A DNA stretch of 64,000 nt from Bugula neritina (taxonomy: Eukaryota; Animalia; Bryozoa): the NCBI GenBank assembly GCA_964035545.1, contig OZ037766.1:10158722-10222721 (forward strand). The letters are read 5' to 3'. The notes under the pieces are model-generated. The model made no database searches. It had not been told where the DNA came from and worked only from the letters and a program-made list of their open reading frames with translations. The position numbers were made by a program, and so were the translations under genes. How positions within the stretch are numbered: the first letter of the stretch is position 1; every line of letters starts with the position of its first letter. This document shows, in pieces, positions 1,990 through 62,416 of the stretch.

Positions 1990-3001
1990 TGTGTAGAAAC
2001 AATGTCTATATCTCTTCTGATAAAACACCGGAAATCAGCTGCTATCTATCCATAGCTACAAAAGAAAGGCAAATTTTAAATGATTATAGCAAATTTTAAG
2101 TTGATATTTTTACAATTCATGTTGATATTCACTGATATCATTGAAATTCAATTAGACATTAATATAAAATAAATGACACCCAACTGAAATTAATATATTC
2201 TAAACATTAGACTTCCTGTCCCTAGGAGCTTTACTCTGGTCGCTACAGTTGAGACTATAACAATTAGATAACTAATTTCAAAGTTTTTGCATTAGATTAT
2301 CCAACAGTGTCATTTTAAACTAAAATAGGAATACCCTTAAATTTCAGTTTGATCATGTTTTGTGGAACACAACCATTAAGCATTTTAACGCAACATCCAC
2401 AAAATCTAGTAACTTATCCTTGCTAACTGAAAAATACTTTGTGAAAAAAAGTAGTAGAATATTCAGTAAAAACTTAGCTGTTTTATTATTACTACAATTG
2501 AGCTTTCTACGCCAAATAATATATGCACAGTATCTAATATAAGCATAATAAATATTTATAAACAATAGATATACATTCACCAAATGTTCACATTTATACT
2601 CAATATGAATATAAATATTATAACAATAATATTTATAATAACAACACTAAATATTATGAGAATACAGTGAGTTATAATTATACCATGGTAAAAGAAAACT
2701 CCAATAAAAATTATAATAATAATTATGATTATCAACATCACTTTTATTTAAGTTTATCACCATCAGTTTTAGTTTAACTGCATTTAGCAAAAACTAATCG
2801 CTAACTCACTATTACTATTAAATTTAGTATGAGTGTATGAGAGTGAAAGCGAGTATTAGTATGATATTGAGTGTAATATTTACTGCATCAGGTTCAGCAA
2901 ACAGAAAATTTACACTTTACAGTTACTAGCTCGCATTTGACTTTCTCCCTTAAGTTCAATTTGAAGTTGAAGTTCATCATAATCACCGTTTTGATTTTAA
3001 T

Positions 3002-3334
3002 TGTTGTTCGGAATCCCGAAGCCCCTGTGGTGTAATGGTTTAGTGCGCCTGCTTGCAAGCTGGAGGTCTGTGGTTTGAATCCCGGTGGGGGCAATTATTT
3101 TACAAGCTATTTCGGCCTTGTCTTGTGGAAGTAATCTCAGGGAGTTGAGTGGAGAGTGGTACCTATAAACTGACAGAGTACATGGTGGGGGGGGGGGGGG
3201 CAGTCCAGTTCTGAAGAAAATTGGGTGGGATGTTGCTTGGAATCCTGAAGCCCCTGTGGTTTAATGATTTAGCGCGCCTGCTTGCAAGCCGGAGGTCTGT
3301 GGTTTGAATCCCGGTGGGGGGCAATTATTTTACA
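3002..3334 (+). mobile_element. Non-autonomous miniature LTR retrotransposon (TRIM) with tRNA-derived LTRs, copy 1
   Basis: Direct repeats 3002-3104 and 3231-3334 (TG...CA, about 92% identical), each with a tRNA-like A-box/B-box cassette. Purine-rich tract 3213-3230 abuts the 3' LTR. Perfect 5-bp TSD TTAAT (2997-3001, 3335-3339). Confidence 0.88.
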
Positions 3335-4408
3335 TTAATTTCATAGATTAATAACAACAAAAATTTAGAGCAAAAGGCAAGTGAACTGTGAGTGTGAATT
3401 CAATCCTCACCATGGGCATGCTTATGCTAAATTAAAACTTGAAGTTGAACTTTAAGTTTATCACAAAATAAAAATGATAAATCTAATCACTGTCACTATC
3501 ACTGAGTATCAGTATCATAATCATAATGATCATCATTATCATTATGATAATGTTTATTGTTTGAAGATCTGTCTCTCAAACTGCAAAATAAAGAAGAGTG
3601 GTAAAAAATGTTACTGTTGGTGTTACTGTTAGGCTGTCACTTTGACTTAGAGCACTGAGTGAGACTTACTCTTAGTGTTAGTCTAACAGTAACTCTAACT
3701 CTAACTAACTCTAACTGTCTAACTCTAAGTCTAAGTCTTACGCTAGCAGTAGCAGGGACTCAAACTCACACCCATAGACTATACAGTATACACTATAATT
3801 GCTTTAATGATCAGCGGTTATATAAATATTAATAATGTTTAATATAAATAACGATACCTATCCTGATACTCACACTGTCACTGTGATACTGATACCAATT
3901 CATTTCTCAATTTTATAAATGCACTGACACTGATTCATAACGATTATTCTGAAATTGGATAAGAAATAGCTTAGGTCTTAAAATCTTCAAACACAGGAAA
4001 TGAGTTCGCAACTAGGCTAACTGAGTGTTAACCAACTTTTTAATTATAATACATAAATAAGCTGAGTCCACAGTCTAATAATTGCTAGTGCTGCTCGAGT
4101 TGTATTCTCGTCGTACAACTGTACTGTGTACACGCTGGTTCAATTTCAGTCAATTATAAACGATGGAAGATTCAACCGATTGAAGAATAAAAGTTCACAG
4201 TATAATCTTTTTAATCACAAGGAAACTACTTCATGTAAAGAATACAGTATAAAAATAGTAATGATATACACATCTATAATTATTACTATTATTAAAATGT
4301 GAAAGGATTCATATTTTCAACGTCACAAAGGCGACATTCAGTAGTTATAATTAGTACTTACAAAACCATTGTTTTCTAAAAATTTACTTAAGTAGACGAA
4401 AATTGCTT

Positions 4409-47039: not shown

Positions 47040-49775
47040 TTAGTCTGCTAGTGTTTTTCCCGTGCGTAGTTCACGGGCTGTTCTAATGAGGAAGCTATGC
47101 AGGAAATTATTAGTATTACAGGATATTGAATTAAAAGAGTTACTGTCCCCAATATTGGTATTACGGAGAGATTTCGTGGAGTTAAGAGTGTTAATTAGGT
47201 TAGGGAAGAATGCTTCATGCTGCAACACTTTGAAGAATAGCGTGAATCTGTGTTCTTGTCTGGATTTATTTAAAGCCTTTAAGTTTAACTCCGCCTTGGA
47301 TTCGGTCACTGAGACATCCCAGCCTTTTAAGTTTTTTACAAAACGTACTGCCTTGTTTTGAACTTTCTCTAGATTGTTGCTCAGCATGAGATGTGCAGGA
47401 TCCCAAATTTCGCAGGCATACTCTAGAAGCGGTCTACACAGGGTAGTGTATGCTATGAGCTTAACTTTAACTGGAGCATCATAGAGTACATTTTTGATTA
47501 ATCCTAAAATACGCATTGCTTTATTGACTACTGAGTTTATGTGATAATCCCACTTTAGATCATGTACCAAATAGATTCCTAGGTATTTTACACAGCTACT
47601 TTGTACTAATTGTTCGTTGCTCAAATAATAAGTGTGCGTTATAGGTTTAGGGCTTTTATCAAACACAATGATGTTGCTTTTTGTTGCATTGAATTTCATG
47701 GAGTTTTTAATACTCCAGTTGTGTAGAGCGTTAAGGTCATTTTGCAAATTTTCCTTGTCTTCGTCTTTAGATATATGCGTATATAGTATAGTGTCATCCG
47801 CGAAAAGCCTTACAGTGCAGTATTTTACACATTTAGTGATGTCATTAATGAAAAGTGTGAAAAGTGCAGGCCCTAAAACGCTACCTTGAGGGACACCTGA
47901 AGTAACAGCTACAGCATCAGAATTGTGGCCTTTAATCACCACTCTCTGAAAACGACTGGTTAGAAACGAGGATATCCATTTTACTAAAAGAGGATTTACT
48001 TTGTACTCAATAAGTTTCTGAATCAACAGATGATGGGGAACTAAATCAAAGGCCTTAGAGAAATCTAGCACTGCCGCATGTGTAGCCATTCCATTGTCCA
48101 TATTACTCAATATGTCATGTGTTAGGCAGGCCAATTGAGTTGTGCAAGACAGGTGACTTCTAAAACCATGCTGGTTTATGGACAGGATCTCATTCAATTT
48201 GTTTTGCATAAGGTGAAGTATAATGTGCTCCATCATTTTACAGACTATTGATGTTAAGGATATTGGTCTATAGTTAGAGGGCAACTCACGATTTCCTTGT
48301 TTGAATATTGGTGTGACATGAGCCAGCTTCCACTCTGATGGAAGTGTACCTGTTGTTAATGTATAGTTGTAGATGGAAGCTAATAGGGAAGAAATAATTT
48401 CAGGGGAGAGCAGTAGCTTTTGTTTGTTAATAGAGTCTGGCCCTGAAGCTTTACCATTTTTGAGAGACTTAATCAATTTTAACACACCTTCAGAAGTTAC
48501 TAATATGTTATCTGCATCAGTTGGAGCCGGAGCTTCTGGGAGCACACGTGCTGGTGTAAAAACACTGTGAAAATACAAGTTCAAAGTATTTGCAATGTCA
48601 GATAAATCATTAGAGCTGGTCTTTTCACTAATTTGAATGCTTTGAATACTGTTATTGTTGCCTTTAATTTCTTTAACATATCTGTAAAAAGGTTTCGAGT
48701 CTCCATTTGCCAATGGGTAGTATAACTTTTCACACATGAAGTCTTTTTTGAGTATTTTAAATAGTTTTTTGTTTTCACGCCTTAGTTTTTTGTATTTGTC
48801 AAATAAAACAGAATCACCTGTGAGCTTGTATCGTGAGTAAAGTTTTCTTTGCTTGTTGCAAGCTCTTTGAGCATCTTTATTAAACCAAACAGGTTGAAAA
48901 TGTTTTCTAGGTTTAAATTGCTTTTTAGGTACATGGTCAGTTATTGCCGAATGTAATCCATTTCTGAATGTAGACCAAACAGTATCAATGGGCTGTATAT
49001 CGTTTATTAGAGAGTTCACTTCTGAGAGCAAGGCTGCCATTGAGGAATCAAAACCGTTTCTATTTATTTTGTGATACACAAAAGTATAACTATCTTCTAC
49101 ACTTTCTTTAAACTTTTGGGGTGCTTCTATTGAGCATTCAATCATAAAGTGATCACTGACACCTGGTTGGATTACATTTAAGTCGCAAATTAAATGTTTA
49201 GAATTAGTGCAAAGAAGGTCAAGTATATTGCCAGCTATATGAGTTGGCTCATTAACAATTTGATCCATGTCTAATTCCGATAACAAATCTATGAAGTCAT
49301 TGTAAAAAGTTCTCCAACTGTTAGAGAAAGTGAAGTCATTCCAATTGATGCCAGGTAAATTAAAATCGCCAGTTAGAACTATTGTTGACCCTGGAAAAAG
49401 TTTTTTGATTTTTGACATGTAATCTACAAGTGGTTTAATGTTGTATGTTGAAGGCGGTCTGTAGTATGTTACCAAAATATAAGGAGCTACGTTAGATTCA
49501 AAATTAAACTTGATTGCTGTTATTTCTGCTTCAGATGGTATATCTATTGGAGAATGTGAGATTTGCGAATTAACAGCTATTAGTACACCCCCTCCATATT
49601 CATTCCTATCTTTTCTGTAAACCAGTTTGTTATTTGGATGGAAGATTTGAGCATTAGCATAGGATGGGTTTAAATGAGTTTCAGTGATAGACATCACATC
49701 GTAGTCAGAAGCTATAGCTTGTAATTCAGCAATTTTACCTTTGATTGATCTTGCATTGATGCTAATTAATCTGTA
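47040..49775 (-). CDS. LINE ORF2: AP endonuclease + reverse transcriptase
   Basis: APE motifs INARSI (upstream of the ORF-track start), ITETHL, YRPP, GDFN, LDL, SDH. RT motifs NYRPISLT, QHGFR, LDFSKAFD, GVPQGSVLGP, LFADD, KYLG. Confidence 0.95.
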   Translation of the reverse strand, partial: YRLISINARSIKGKIAELQAIASDYDVMSITETHLNPSYANAQIFHPNNKLVYRKDRNEYGGGVLIAVNSQISHSPIDIPSEAEITAIKFNFESNVAPYILVTYYRPPSTYNIKPLVDYMSKIKKLFPGSTIVLTGDFNLPGINWNDFTFSNSWRTFYNDFIDLLSELDMDQIVNEPTHIAGNILDLLCTNSKHLICDLNVIQPGVSDHFMIECSIEAPQKFKESVEDSYTFVYHKINRNGFDSSMAALLSEVNSLINDIQPIDTVWSTFRNGLHSAITDHVPKKQFKPRKHFQPVWFNKDAQRACNKQRKLYSRYKLTGDSVLFDKYKKLRRENKKLFKILKKDFMCEKLYYPLANGDSKPFYRYVKEIKGNNNSIQSIQISEKTSSNDLSDIANTLNLYFHSVFTPARVLPEAPAPTDADNILVTSEGVLKLIKSLKNGKASGPDSINKQKLLLSPEIISSLLASIYNYTLTTGTLPSEWKLAHVTPIFKQGNRELPSNYRPISLTSIVCKMMEHIILHLMQNKLNEILSINQHGFRSHLSCTTQLACLTHDILSNMDNGMATHAAVLDFSKAFDLVPHHLLIQKLIEYKVNPLLVKWISSFLTSRFQRVVIKGHNSDAVAVTSGVPQGSVLGPALFTLFINDITKCVKYCTVRLFADDTILYTHISKDEDKENLQNDLNALHNWSIKNSMKFNATKSNIIVFDKSPKPITHTYYLSNEQLVQSSCVKYLGIYLVHDLKWDYHINSVVNKAMRILGLIKNVLYDAPVKVKLIAYTTLCRPLLEYACEIWDPAHLMLSNNLEKVQNKAVRFVKNLKGWDVSVTESKAELNLKALNKSRQEHRFTLFFKVLQHEAFFPNLINTLNSTKSLRNTNIGDSNSFNSISCNTNNFLHSFLIRTARELRTGKTLAD

Positions 49776-50617
49776 GATATTTTGACTATTTGGTTTTTCT
49801 GTATTTTGTATGTGCTTAGAGGATCCTGTTTTCTTACGTCTCTTAACTGTTGTCTCAACTGAAAATCCTTGTTTTGCTCTTCTTTAGTTAAGTCTAGGCG
49901 TGCAAAAGTACCTGGTACTTTGAGATTGTTGATACGTTTTAAAAGTTCCCACTTGTCAAACTCTGAGTCAAGTGAGAGTCTAACAGGTCGAGGTTTATCT
50001 ACTTTTTTAGCCCCTAGTCTAATAGTATTAGATTTTGTGGCATTAAACATAAAACTACACTCAGAAATCATAGAATTTACCAGTTCGACTGTGTCAGCAG
50101 GGGATGATTCACCCTCATTAATGCCAAATATGATGACATTCTTCGCTCTGTTTTCAGTTGATAAATCATTTCTAAGATTTTTTATTTGTTTTTCTTGGTC
50201 TTTTATACATTTCTCTTGGTCATTTAGATGCTTGCTTAAAACACCTTCAGATTTTTCAATTTTGGAAACTACACTAGCATATGTTTCATCACTCTTGGAC
50301 TCTTGTGTGTCAATAAAAGTTTCAAGCTTTGTTTCTAATGCTTTAAACCTAGAGTCAATCGATTTGAGAACATGATCACACTTATCACAAAACCAGTGGA
50401 TTCCCCTCTTTTCAATTGTGTTCATGTCACTCGCATCTAAGTCCACGCATCTAATATGAAACCAGTTAAAGCAGGACTCACACTCGATCGTTAAGTCACT
50501 CAGGGTTTTATTGCACTTTTCACATTTTGATTTTTCAGTATTTTTCCTGCTACTAGCAGCATCACCAGAGGCAGCACTGTCCACACGACCTCTTCTTGTT
50601 TGCGTTTTGGGGGGCAT
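49766..50617 (-). CDS. LINE ORF1: PHD finger + coiled coil + L1-ORF1-like RRM region
   Basis: C4HC3 pattern CEKC..CESC..WFHIRC..WFCDKC, followed by a coiled coil, NVIIFGINE, RLG...PRPVRL and DLT motifs typical of CR1/L2 ORF1. Confidence 0.9.
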   Translation of the reverse strand: MPPKTQTRRGRVDSAASGDAASSRKNTEKSKCEKCNKTLSDLTIECESCFNWFHIRCVDLDASDMNTIEKRGIHWFCDKCDHVLKSIDSRFKALETKLETFIDTQESKSDETYASVVSKIEKSEGVLSKHLNDQEKCIKDQEKQIKNLRNDLSTENRAKNVIIFGINEGESSPADTVELVNSMISECSFMFNATKSNTIRLGAKKVDKPRPVRLSLDSEFDKWELLKRINNLKVPGTFARLDLTKEEQNKDFQLRQQLRDVRKQDPLSTYKIQKNQIVKISTD

Positions 50618-57900: not shown

Positions 57901-60004
57901 GTTCTTAGACCATCAAAATCTTGGAAGTATTCAATCACCTACCAAACCATTTAAATTACACTTAAATAAATAGAAAATGCCTAACATTGGCATTAAAAAT
58001 GAGATATTAAACTTATTAAAATATTGACTTTCGATTATTTAAAAACATATTATACATACCCTGAGTCGATTTGTGAGCACGTGATGCCTAACTCTGGCTA
58101 TCAAACTGCTCATATCAACCTCGCTGATATCACATTTGGGCACAGAACTCAGATCTGGGTACATTGGTTTAACTGCAGTTTCAGATAGAGTGACTCTACC
58201 ACCATCAGTACCAGGTATAGCCGTAGAGAAATCTACCGCTGGAGGACTGTCAATGGTGAATCCAACAAACTCTGTAACACAATTGTAGGTCAATGTATAC
58301 ATGTATGTGTGCATGTACATAGAAGGTACCTTGTGTTGCAAATGCATAAAATCACCGTTTGGAGTACAGCATAAGAAAATCAGTCAAAGTGAGTCATATT
58401 CAAGCTAATAATATTTAAATTACATTGCAGAAAAGTAGTCTAAATCAATCACAGAACAGCACAACATGTTACTTACTGTCGTCGATAGACTGTACAAAAG
58501 CAGGGTAGTTGACGTCACCAGTTGCCTGATCAATAAACTTGCGGCAAAGCAGCTTAAAATCTTCATCAGTTACATTTATTGTGAGAAAGTGAAGCATGCG
58601 TCTAAACTGCAGTGGGGTGATAACTCTAGTGTAGGCACAACTCTGAAAGGTATCACAACCAATTATCAAATTAAATATTAATTTGTCTAACATAACTTCA
58701 AATGAAGAATTGAAAACCACTAATTTTAATTGTAAGTTTTTAGTTGATATTGTACATATTAAAATAATTTAACTCATAAAAGTCAATTTTCTACAGCTTA
58801 CTAAAATTGTTATCAAATACTGGATATAAATTAATAGTTGGATGTTGACTATCTTTGGATAAATGTACCACAACATTTTTTGATTCTTAAAACACAATAT
58901 ATTACAGACTATATACCTTATGTTACTTTATTACTTAATTTCAAATTTGATCTATTGATCTGATAATAAACTCAGCAAAAACAGAGTTATAGATTCAGGT
59001 AAAGTCTGATGTCAAACTTTCAATTTTAAAAAAATTTAATTTTATTCACAATATTACAAACTTCCGTAAAATTAAATGTGTTTTCTTAAATTTTCCTTTT
59101 ATATGCCTGCATTTTATTGGACCTATATGCAGCTATATAACCATGGCATATAGAAGTCTAATAAAATGCAGGCAGATAATGCAAATGAAAATACAGTCAA
59201 GCTTTAGCTAAACATACCCTGTCGTAGTCTTTGAAATATTGGTACATCATAATACGTCTCTCATTAACCTGGTTGATGATCATGCTGAGTACCGTCTTGA
59301 GACGTGATTCTTCTGCGTCACTCAATGTTGGAATAGTCTAAACAAACAATAAATTACTATAATATGGAATATTGTGTGTATTCTGTTGGAGGAGACAACC
59401 CCCAAAACAGCTGCCTGTCAGCAGGTTGAGCTATACTATATTTATAAGTAGTAAATAAAAAAAATCTTTGATATAGTAAGTATTATGTACTTATTGTTCA
59501 ACTATTAGCTTCATGCTACCACACATATAGTATAACAAGTGCCATTTTAAAACTACTTTAGTTATTGTAGTGATGAGTTTACCCAGTGCCACCCCCCCCC
59601 TCGTAGTGTAATGGTTAGCACACTTGCTTGCAAGCCAGGGGTCTCGGGTTTGATTCCCAGTGGGGGCAATTATTTTTCAAGCTATTTCGGCCTTTAGTGA
59701 AATGTAGTAGTAGTACTCCGAGGGAGTTAAGAGGCCAGGGAAGCCTGAAGACTGAAGGAGTTGTAGATAGGCCAGTGGAGTTCAGAGAACTGGGTGGGAT
59801 GTAGTGATGAGTTTACCCAGTGGTCCCCATGCTGTAATGGTTAGCATACTTCCTTGCAAGCCAGGGGTCTCGGGTTTGATTCCCAGTGAGGGCAATTATT
59901 TTTTAGTTAATCATTGTATAGCTACCCCTCATTTTCAAAGAATATCTGCACTTTTATTTACTGTTCACCAACACCAAATTTTCTATACTACACACATGCA
60001 CACA

Positions 60005-60056
<52 letters not shown>

Positions 60057-60066
60057 CACACGCACA

Positions 60067-60109
<43 letters not shown>

Positions 60110-62416
60110 ATATGCATACATGTATATAAACCTAACTATGCATAGTATCTTTTCCAAATAATAATTATTCTGCGATGGCATTACTGATGTTCAGTCTTAA
60201 CTCACCCTGTTTAGGGAACCTTCTTTGGGGTGGACTGGTGTTAGAGTAGCTTTCTTATCTAAATCTGGAATATTGAAGGCTGCAAAAAAACAAATATATC
60301 GCATGTAAAAAGGAATGTTTTATATTCAGCCAAAAATTGTTTTGCACAAATCTTGGAGTTATCATTTCAAATAATATGAGGTTCAAGTCTAGGCATTGAA
60401 AATTTTGCTCTATGCTGAAATCCAGGTTACATACTTGGTAAATTCGTAAAAGTGTGCAGTCTAAATTCAACTCACCATTTTCCATCATGTCACAGAACTC
60501 CTTATACTGAACTCTACCATCAGAGGTTTTGTAAAAGTTGACAATTTTTTGCATGTCATGTCGGCTAAGTTGAGCCTCTTTGCCGACTGCTAAGGAAAGT
60601 CCACACAAGAACTGATTTTCTGTGACAATTCCAGACCGCAGACGGTCATGATCTTTGAAAAATTCCGGTGTTCGAATGCCATGCTTAAATACAGCAATCC
60701 TGATTTTGTCGAAGATCTGCTGAACTGATGGATCTTCCACTTTCTGTTGGAATAGTAAAAAAACACTAGTGGTAAGCATTCGTATTTTATTTTGTAACTT
60801 AAAGTATACATAACGAGATGTTAATATCTAAGCATTGTTTTCAATGTTTATTGTTCAAATGCTTTTTATGTTGTAAAGTTGTAAAATTAGGTATTCAGTT
60901 TATATCAAATGTTATAGAAAAATGAGTTCCTCATATTATAGAATTGATAATTTAAAATGATTTCATGCTGAAACAGATTGTTACTTCCTTACCTCATTTG
61001 GTATGTAATCAGTTTTAGCACATGTAGAATTTAGATTCAGTTGTTGAGCTGCCATATTGTCGCCAACGGCAACAAGATCATGATGCAGGTTTAAATACAC
61101 AACTAGTCCTGGCTCATTAGGATCTCCATACTTTTTTACCAGTCTAGTTATTTCTGCCTCATCAACATCAGGAGGGCCAGGAAAAGCTCGATAGAACTAC
61201 AAGCATAAAGTATGCAATTATACTATCATTCTTAATAAAAGTTTTATTTGTGATAGTATCATATAAGCAAAAATTACAATTTAAGTAACATCTTCTAGCC
61301 CATTTATCATTTAAAATTTAACTAATAATTACCATACTCTTTAATTAAAACGACTATATGTACAAATTTTTAACTACACCTGCTAATATAAATCTAATTA
61401 ACAAATAAAATTAAGAAATATATATCACCACTTGAAAATATAATAAACGTACTTGACTTTCTGTGATTTTGCCAATATGGTGAAAATCAAAGTCTTCATA
61501 GCAAGTTCGAAGGTTGATGCCATGGTACTTATAAAATTCCACCATCTTACGCAAGGTTTCTTCAACTTTCTTTTCAGAAGCTGGACTAAGTGGTCGTATA
61601 GTTCTCTGTGTCCCTAGACTGTAAAAAGCCATGACTAAATTATCACATTTAATTCTCATGCTTATTGTATATAGGCTTAGCTAAAATAATATTTAGTAAA
61701 TCAAAATACAAACATCTGCAAGAACATTTATAATAAATTATATCAACAGTTTGGTCATGAGATAATTAAACACCAATTACTTTATGAGCTGTGCATGCTA
61801 TTTAAAAATTATAGTTTAAAAACAGAAATTCAATATGAACAACTGTACTTACAACTCGAGAGGCTCAACTTTTTGTAAAGCAGGGTCAGTTTTAAAATTT
61901 GTTGCTGCAAAGGATGTTTCAATCAAGTTAGAAAATTGCTTCCAGCAAATTCTCCCATTTCTTTTGATATCATATTTTTGCTTGATGAGCTGTTCTTCTT
62001 GTGGAGTAAACTTGAGTCCTAAGTTCATCCATAGGCAACGGAAAAACTGGGAATCTACATAAAGTAATAAATACAACTTGCAAAAGTGTTAAAAAATTAA
62101 GTTGATTCATGGGCATGTAACACTCTCTTACCATAAATTTATTCATATTTTATTAAAACTTGATCACATTTTATTTTACTATCAAATATATTTATTGCAA
62201 AAATATTAAGCTTTGATGTGTGGCCAAGCATACAAAAATTTGCTCTCCAAACACAAAGACTAATAATGTATGTCTTAATATCTTAAAATAATTACCAGTT
62301 ACATAGCCAGACCGAAGCCGGTCATAGTCTATAAAGAATTCTGATGGGCGAAGTCTCTTAGTAAGACAGAGAGTCCTAACTGTCTCTTCCACTTTATCTA
62401 CTGCGGCCGCAACCAT
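54938..62416 (-). CDS. Multi EF-hand-pair repeat protein (about 940 aa, about 15 exons), CFAP115/EFCAB6-like
   Basis: Eight repeats of FxD(F/Y/H)Dxxxx(G)x(I/V)(T/S)xxxF, each followed by a degenerate second hand (e.g. [24 protein letters not shown]). Spliced exons are consistent from ATG 62416 to TAA 54938. The family name is tentative. Confidence 0.75.
59104..59174. repeat. Short hairpin / mini-MITE
   Basis: TGCCTGCATTTTATT...AATAAAATGCAGGCA perfect 15-bp inverted repeat, extended by TATATGC/GCATATA. Confidence 0.65.
59566..59905 (+). mobile_element. TRIM with tRNA-derived LTRs, copy 2 (different subfamily)
   Basis: LTRs 59566-59679 (TG...CA) and 59800-59905 (TG...TA). Same AGCTATTTCGGCC after the 5' LTR and TGGGTGGGA before the 3' LTR as copy 1. 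Flanks GTTAT/GTTAA (4 of 5). Confidence 0.85.
59990..60110. repeat. (CACG)n(CA)n compound microsatellite
   Basis: Directly visible. Confidence 0.97.

Follow-up and report, generated by a model that had tools for sequence, protein, structure and literature searches.

A 12-nt site complementary to the 5′ end of tRNA-Phe adjoins the LTR of Helenus-type TRIMs in Bugula neritina and is a candidate primer-binding site

TRIMs with tRNA-like LTRs in the bryozoan Bugula neritina carry, directly after the 5′ LTR, a 12-nt sequence, AGCTATTTCGGC, that is complementary to the first 12 nt of the host tRNA-Phe. We lean toward the interpretation that this 12-mer is a working primer-binding site, to which tRNA-Phe anneals through its 5′ end before being cut after U12; the balance in favor of this reading is modest, and it is inferred from sequence alone. 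The anatomy of the elements, the complementarity, the copy numbers, the presence of the site in more than one family and in two organisms, and the lack of any other pairing partner are shown by the data below, but the priming, the cut, and the enzyme that makes the cut are inferences for which there is no evidence from primer-linked cDNA or a 12-nt fragment. The element type is a known one, as its features show, and only the primer site is unusual; we regard it as a new variant, its use in priming again being inferred.

The window (the whole stretch of 64,000 nt that was analyzed, C2:10158722-10222721 of a 216-Mb assembly) contains two of these TRIMs, each smaller than 1 kb, with two direct LTRs, TG...CA ends, and no ORF that fits. 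Copy 1 (3002 to 3334, 333 bp) and copy 2 (59566 to 59905, 340 bp) have an identical layout, with LTR borders set by comparison of the 5′ and 3′ LTRs together with the target-site duplications (TSDs). In copy 1, on the plus strand, the 5′ LTR (3002 to 3104, 103 nt, bounded by TG...CA) is 92% identical to its paired 3′ LTR (3231 to 3334), and the same TSD, TTAAT, is present on the left (2997 to 3001) and on the right (3335 to 3339). The 5′ LTR contains a tRNA-like unit with A and B boxes (3021 to 3093; Rfam RF00005, 32.5 bits, above the gathering score of 29), which is followed by ATTATTTTACA; the T4 run at 3098 to 3101, read from the sequence as a candidate pol III terminator, is 3 nt short of the LTR end. 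The putative primer-binding site follows at 3105 to 3116, and the polypurine tract, GAAGAAAATTGGGTGGGA (3213 to 3230), adjoins the 3′ LTR and is kept across copies and in the metagenome family described below. Copy 2, also on the plus strand, has a 5′ LTR of 114 nt (59566 to 59679) with 87% identity to a 3′ LTR (59800 to 59905) whose terminal CA has mutated to TA, a tRNA-like unit at 59597 to 59668 (RF00005, 34 bits; called by ARAGORN as tRNA-Cys(GCA) at 59596 to 59667), the putative site at 59680 to 59691, and a polypurine tract, AGAGAACTGGGTGGGA (59784 to 59799), preceding the 3′ LTR. Its TSDs, GTTAT on the left (59561 to 59565) and GTTAA on the right (59906 to 59910), match at four of five positions. 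The 5′ LTRs end in ...TTTTACA (copy 1) and ...TTTTTCA (copy 2), and in both copies the base after the terminal CA is the first base of the 12-mer. These are the sole two matches to AGCTATTTCGGC in the window, even with one mismatch allowed, and 0.10 matches are expected by chance. The two copies belong to different subfamilies, between which internal identity is 0.36 to 0.70 over most of the length, compared with 1.00 for the 12-mer. We note that the copies were selected by the motif, such that the identity of the 12-mer is 1.00 by construction, whereas the divergence of the flanks is not. The internal region of copy 1 also has a run of ∼14 G residues (3187 to 3200), and similar runs of G or of C are present at four other loci (L006, L055, L058, and L063).

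Five host tRNA-Phe(GAA) genes were called by ARAGORN, each of which starts exactly GCCGAAATAGCT, and the genes are identical over 73 nt. All 12 bases of the site pair with nt 1 to 12 of this cytoplasmic tRNA (duplex, −19.5 kcal/mol), a segment made up of the 5′ side of the acceptor stem, positions U8 and A9, and three D-stem bases. The site reads AGCT... and has no TGG start, so the canonical criterion for a primer site matching a tRNA 3′ end is not met; no TGG-type site was found near the LTR in the window copies, and nowhere does the TRIM element contain a stretch of 7 nt or more that could pair with the tRNA-Phe 3′ end. The 12-mer is present at 126 sites in the genome, five of which are the tRNA-Phe genes and nearly all the others of which come directly after a CA of the LTR type; a control 12-mer complementary to nt 1 to 12 of tRNA-Lys(CTT) is present at only six sites. 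Outside of the elements, the complement of the 12-mer occurs in the genome only in tRNA-Phe genes. The base before the site is always the terminal A of the LTR, and the 13th base is C in the window TRIM family, T in the metagenome TRIM, and A in another LTR family; because the 13th base varies by family, the constraint stops where the tRNA ends. The invariant stretch is exactly the 12 bases able to pair with the tRNA, with tRNA nt 1 ending the duplex. The tRNA-Phe genes (L031 to L035) themselves share a conserved 3′ trailer, ACTGCCAA in four of them and ACACCGAT in the fifth.

The site is widespread in the genome. The 13-mer AGCTATTTCGGCC has 73 matches, compared with none for the reversed control, and all 72 sites outside the tRNA gene were read. 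These have a tRNA-like LTR upstream, with the exception of two duplicated 5′-truncated copies, a few others that are also 5′-truncated (L040 and L052, for example), and decayed copies. A typical TRIM has an LTR of ∼105 nt, an internal region of ∼120 nt, and a total length of ∼330 bp, with the family polypurine tract, AGAGAACTGGGTGGGA, adjoining the 3′ LTR. In the 31 copies with both LTRs aligned, total lengths range from 295 to 353 bp, and the 5-bp TSD is perfect in 15 and matches at four of five bases in six more; the boundary rule is crude for the remainder. The LTR pairs within elements are 78 to 100% identical, which indicates insertions of widely differing age, some old and some very recent. 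Of 70 copies examined, 61 have an LTR that ends in CA, 61 have a T4 run in the last 14 nt of the LTR, and 49 retain an intact B box. When a single internal region was used as the query, 276 genome candidates were recovered, and in the 40 of these that were scored (the best-matching internal regions, 90 to 100% identical) the exact 13-mer is kept in 22. This proportion fits neutral decay after insertion, and we therefore regard the motif as the ancestral state of the family rather than as a product of the way in which the copies were chosen.

Several of the genomic copies have features of their own. Adjacent or tandem TRIMs are present at two loci, with the two sites 465 bp apart and the upstream 115 nt 100% identical at one (L059), and with the sites 228 bp apart and an additional inverted LTR at the other (L006). 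At a third locus (L037, in the C3:29093686 region), a minisatellite of GTGTAGTGTATTGTA-like units has grown from the TRIM leader just past the primer site. Two loci on C5 (L077, C5:8187500-8197499; L078, C5:8357500-8367499) are parts of a segmental duplication ∼170 kb apart and ∼96% identical over more than 5 kb, which carries a TRIM truncated exactly at the border between the LTR and the primer site.

The same 12 bases are also found outside this TRIM family. With a base other than C at the 13th position, the 12-mer has 53 further matches in the genome compared with three for the control; four of the 53 are tRNA-Phe genes, and in 40 of them CA directly precedes the site, where the tRNA genes have TG. 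There are 27 CA-preceded sites with A as the 13th base, and the TRIM LTR end, TTTWCA, is present in only two. The TRIM LTR end is thus absent from 25 CA+AGCTATTTCGGC+A sites, which implies that these 12 bases also follow the distinct LTR of at least one other family; examples are at C1:12510207(+), C2:10820833(+), C2:20507695(−), C4:23825629(+), and C4:23828792(+), the last two being 3163 bp apart. It is possible that the family at these 25 sites is the autonomous partner of the TRIMs.

A related family was found in metagenome contigs, which were scanned for a B box followed by 10 to 40 nt and then CA+12-mer. Six contigs matched, five of which are from ERZ1740065 (L079 to L082 and L084; GC content, 0.42); the sixth (L083; GC content, 0.68) was rejected as a chance bacterial match. 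The ERZ1740065 elements have an LTR of ∼100 nt with a tRNA-like unit and TTTTACA, then the 12-mer, and then T, followed by a diverged internal part of ∼145 nt and a purine tract, GAGAACTGGGTGAGA. The TSD is 5 bp (AGTTC in L084), and the LTR pairs are 83 to 94% identical in the three contigs with clear pairs. When the 7.7-kb contig L079 was compared with the B. neritina genome, only ∼65 nt could be aligned, corresponding to the LTR end and the site (78 to 89% identity), which places its origin in another organism. When three B. neritina copies are aligned with two metagenome copies, the longest unbroken invariant block is TTTT.CA+AGCTATTTCGGC, within which the T4 run is invariant, followed in rank by the B box, the CTTGCAAG block, and the purine tract. 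Because genome copies and metagenome contigs alike were retrieved with the motif as query, its own invariance is in part a product of that selection; this does not apply to the common architecture or to the divergence outside the motif. A scan of IMG/VR for CA+12-mer gave 112 chance matches in phage contigs and no LTR pairs.

These results bear out the structural claims of a preliminary description of the window, which had been made without database searches. Its statements that the 12-mer directly follows the 5′ LTR in both TRIMs (3105 to 3116 and 59680 to 59691), that it lacks a TGG start, and that it is the exact reverse complement of the tRNA-Phe(GAA) start all held, the last with five host genes beginning GCCGAAATAGCT. 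Its statement that the 12-mer is identical in the two copies despite a diverged internal region held as well, with the caveat of selection by motif noted above, and so did its statement that the LTRs contain no complement of the site, the longest in four elements being only 4 to 5 nt. The description had named a better match to the 3′ end of another RNA as something that would refute it, and none was found, genomic complements outside the elements being confined to tRNA-Phe genes. It had likewise named a lack of conservation over many copies, and here conservation held: the motif is ancestral in a family of at least 276 copies and several subfamilies, and is present in at least one other LTR family and in the related metagenome family.

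Contigs from four sequencing runs were placed on positions 2950 to 3400 of the window; one run is recorded as RNA-Seq, and for the other three RNA is a guess. Family sequences are present in all four, and some pieces run from the LTR across the site into the internal part (3053 to 3152 and 3062 to 3185, for example). Site-bearing RNAs that extend past the T4 run of the 5′ LTR therefore probably exist. We consider such transcripts likely, with the qualification that contigs show presence and not RNA ends or strand.

The mechanism that we propose is as follows. Pol III would start just upstream of the tRNA-like unit, read in part through the weak T4 of the 5′ LTR, and stop at the T4 of the 3′ LTR, and the resulting RNA would have a repeat of ∼90 nt at both ends and a U5 of 3 nt. 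In the particle of the partner element, tRNA-Phe would be unfolded and its nt 1 to 12 would pair with the site in the element RNA. A cut between U12 and C13 would provide the 3′-OH, with GCCGAAAUAGCU as the primer. The likeliest cutter would be the RNase H of the partner element acting on an RNA:RNA duplex, with the host tRNA cut in trans; alternatively, a ready-made 5′ tRNA fragment could be the source of the 3′-OH. Whichever the source, priming from U12 of tRNA-Phe would have minus-strand DNA synthesis copy ACA and the repeat and then jump to the 3′ end, and, because it would start at the U12 3′-OH, the first base copied would be the last A of the LTR. Plus-strand strong-stop synthesis would then copy the 12-nt RNA primer to its 5′ end, rewriting the site from the tRNA in each cycle, and such recopying would account for exactly 12 invariant bases and a free 13th base across families. 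Strong-stop copying to the 5′ end of the primer is established for retroviruses, and is only inferred for TRIMs here. Priming from an RNA 5′ end after a cut has been described for Tf1 and Tj1, with Tf1 using the first 11 nt of its own mRNA (PMC4600332). To our knowledge, there is no precedent for a 12-nt primer cut within the D stem of a folded, modified tRNA, and the known tRNA 5′ fragments are longer than 12 nt.

Other explanations for the 12-mer can be considered, of which the most serious, albeit unlikely, is that it is a conserved cis element, acting for example in packaging, in dimerization, or as a signal past the pol III terminator, and that the match to tRNA-Phe is a relic or a coincidence. 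In support of this, conservation between subfamilies extends to other internal blocks, namely GGAGTTGAGTGG and the region of the polypurine tract, so that conservation alone is no proof of priming. However, a random 12-mer is calculated to match some 12-nt window of ∼50 tRNAs with a chance of ∼2 in 10,000, and here it is the very first window that is matched; moreover, the conserved block ends exactly at the tRNA terminus, and the elements would be left with no primer site at all. A second possibility, which we consider very unlikely, is that tRNA-Phe docks on the site through its 5′ end, either to be packaged or to act as a scaffold, with DNA synthesis primed elsewhere or by another 3′ end. 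The exact pairing to tRNA-Phe is compatible with docking, and auxiliary contacts between tRNA and genome are established for Ty1, Ty3, and retroviruses such as HIV. Nonetheless, the site adjoins the LTR end, where the 3′ end of a primer must sit, and the element has neither a second conserved tRNA-Phe complement, the 3′ end included, nor a TGG-type site near the LTR.

It is similarly very unlikely that the primer is some other RNA ending in ...GCCGAAAUAGCU-3′, such as a small RNA that is not annotated or RNA transcribed antisense from a sister element. Antisense transcripts would include the complement of the site, which is present on the minus strand of every copy, and the contigs of the sequencing runs are on both strands, although contigs do not reveal the strand of the RNA. 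Against this, the complement outside the elements is present only in tRNA-Phe genes, the 3′ terminus of an antisense primer would have to fall exactly on the LTR border, and such a primer would leave unexplained both why the constraint ends at base 12 and why the same 12 bases are present in an unrelated LTR family and in another organism. Self-priming of the Tf1 type, in which the 5′ end of the element's own RNA would fold back on the site, is all but excluded. The length of the pairing (12 versus 11 nt) and the 5-bp TSD do resemble Tf1 (PMC4600332), but the longest complement of the site in the four elements is no longer than the mean for shuffled motifs, and self-priming remains conceivable only if the RNA 5′ end is spliced from outside the element. 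Two further readings were rejected. Reversing the orientation of the element gives a poor purine tract, an implausible “site” of TCCCACCC, and an inverted tRNA-like unit and T run, and for a bipartite site involving the tRNA 3′ end the sole extra match is one of 7 nt to nt 40 to 46 of tRNA-Phe, which we take to be chance because it is present in one subfamily only.

The preliminary description called these elements TRIMs, and to this must be added that they are of a published kind. Helenus elements, for which TRIMp3 is the collective term, are TRIMs with tRNA-like LTRs and are the tRNA counterpart of Cassandra (Kojima 2024, PMC10886601). The B. neritina TRIMs resemble them in their size of ∼330 bp, in having two LTRs of ∼105 nt, each with a tRNA-like unit with A and B boxes, and in having a primer site and a polypurine tract at the ends of an internal part of ∼120 nt, no ORF, and many copies. 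The published animal Helenus elements all have 4-bp TSDs and TGG-type sites (PMC10886601, Table S1 and Fig. S2), which match the 3′ ends of tRNAs for Lys, Leu, Trp, Arg, His, Ile, Pro, Glu, and Ser, whereas the B. neritina TRIMs have a 5-bp TSD and a site for tRNA-Phe nt 1 to 12. We note that the 4-bp TSD and 3′-end site are traits of the animal Helenus elements described so far and not a definition. Fungal Helenus sites pair with anticodon loops, as do those of copia and Ty5 (PMC10886601). Motifs of the TRIM family were not found in the sequence file of that study, although line breaks could hide matches. As in Cassandra, a unit resembling a pol III gene, with promoter and terminator, is present in the LTR (PMC10886601); Cassandra, however, is a plant element with 5S rRNA rather than a tRNA-like unit in its LTR. 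Cassandra has a canonical initiator-tRNA site.

The putative priming shares features with each of the known modes. As in Tf1 and Tj1 (Levin 1995, 1996; PMC4600332), the 5′-terminal ∼11 to 12 nt of an RNA pair with the site and must be cut free, and the TSD is 5 bp; the Tf1 primer, however, is its own transcript, whereas the TRIM has no such complement and the sole matching RNA is the host tRNA. As for copia and Ty5, a host tRNA is used after an internal cut, which is inferred for the TRIM, and there is no TGG, but copia and Ty5 sites pair with the anticodon stem-loop region of tRNA-iMet to give a primer of ∼39 nt rather than with tRNA-Phe nt 1 to 12, and no RVT_2 match lies beside any 12-mer site. 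With canonical 3′-end priming, as in retroviruses and most LTR retrotransposons, it shares the position of the site directly after U5, the host tRNA, and probably the rewriting of the site each cycle, and it differs in using the opposite tRNA end, in lacking TGG, and in having a pairing of 12 nt rather than ∼18 nt. Full-text searches of the literature returned no description of priming from the 5′ end of a tRNA; a 5′ tRNA fragment has been described that has the same sense as the canonical site and is not a primer (PMC11962134). The suggestion in the preliminary description that a short tRNA-Phe 5′ fragment acts as primer is supported, with the priming itself inferred from sequence. A search by site location for the autonomous partner it envisaged found none among the matches that were scored.

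That search covered several classes of protein. None of the 57 copia RT matches, ∼20 of which are in long open frames, lies next to or downstream of any 12-mer site, and no BEL/Pao protease match lies downstream of any such site on the same strand and at a fitting distance. There were 1304 integrase and 2192 RT candidates, of which only the best 150 each were scored; none of these is downstream of any 12-mer site and, because so few were scored, a Gypsy-type partner is not excluded. A site at C6:10317897, with an integrase 5.3 kb on, was rejected as the partner, because the site is absent from the other copies of the high-copy family concerned. Two loci without a tRNA-like LTR upstream (L047 and L048) were also rejected, being a segmental duplication that carries a 5′-truncated TRIM.

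Textbook schemes for LTR elements derive the primer 3′-OH from the CCA end of a tRNA, from a half-tRNA (copia and Ty5), or from the element's own 5′ end (Tf1). A bolder reading, which we could defend about as readily as dismiss, is that a lineage of animal LTR elements, represented in two or more organisms and comprising Helenus-type TRIMs together with one or more other LTR families, primes from a 12-nt 5′ piece of tRNA-Phe that is cut after pairing, and that this constitutes a fourth priming mode. If so, it would combine the host-tRNA dependence of 3′-end priming with the 5′-end-cut chemistry of self-priming, and it would mean either that the RNase H of an element is able to cleave host tRNA within the D stem or that very short 5′ tRNA fragments can prime. 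Natural competitors or inhibitors at the site would then be 5′ rather than 3′ tRNA fragments. Tools such as LTRdigest seek only tRNA 3′ ends and would therefore call such elements site-less. The claim is directly testable, because the predicted by-product, tRNA-Phe starting from C13, and the primer-linked cDNA both have exactly predicted ends.

The window contains other features beside the TRIMs. A (GCAC)n/(CA)n microsatellite (59990 to 60110) lies ∼90 bp downstream of TRIM copy 2, and a non-LTR retrotransposon on the minus strand (47040 to 50617), unrelated to the TRIMs, has two ORFs, the first of 283 aa with a PHD finger and the second of 885 aa with domains for endonuclease and reverse transcriptase. 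An open frame on the minus strand at 1294 to 2028 matches the N-terminal domain of hormone-sensitive lipase (HSL_N, E = 1.6e-33) and is probably an exon of a host gene.
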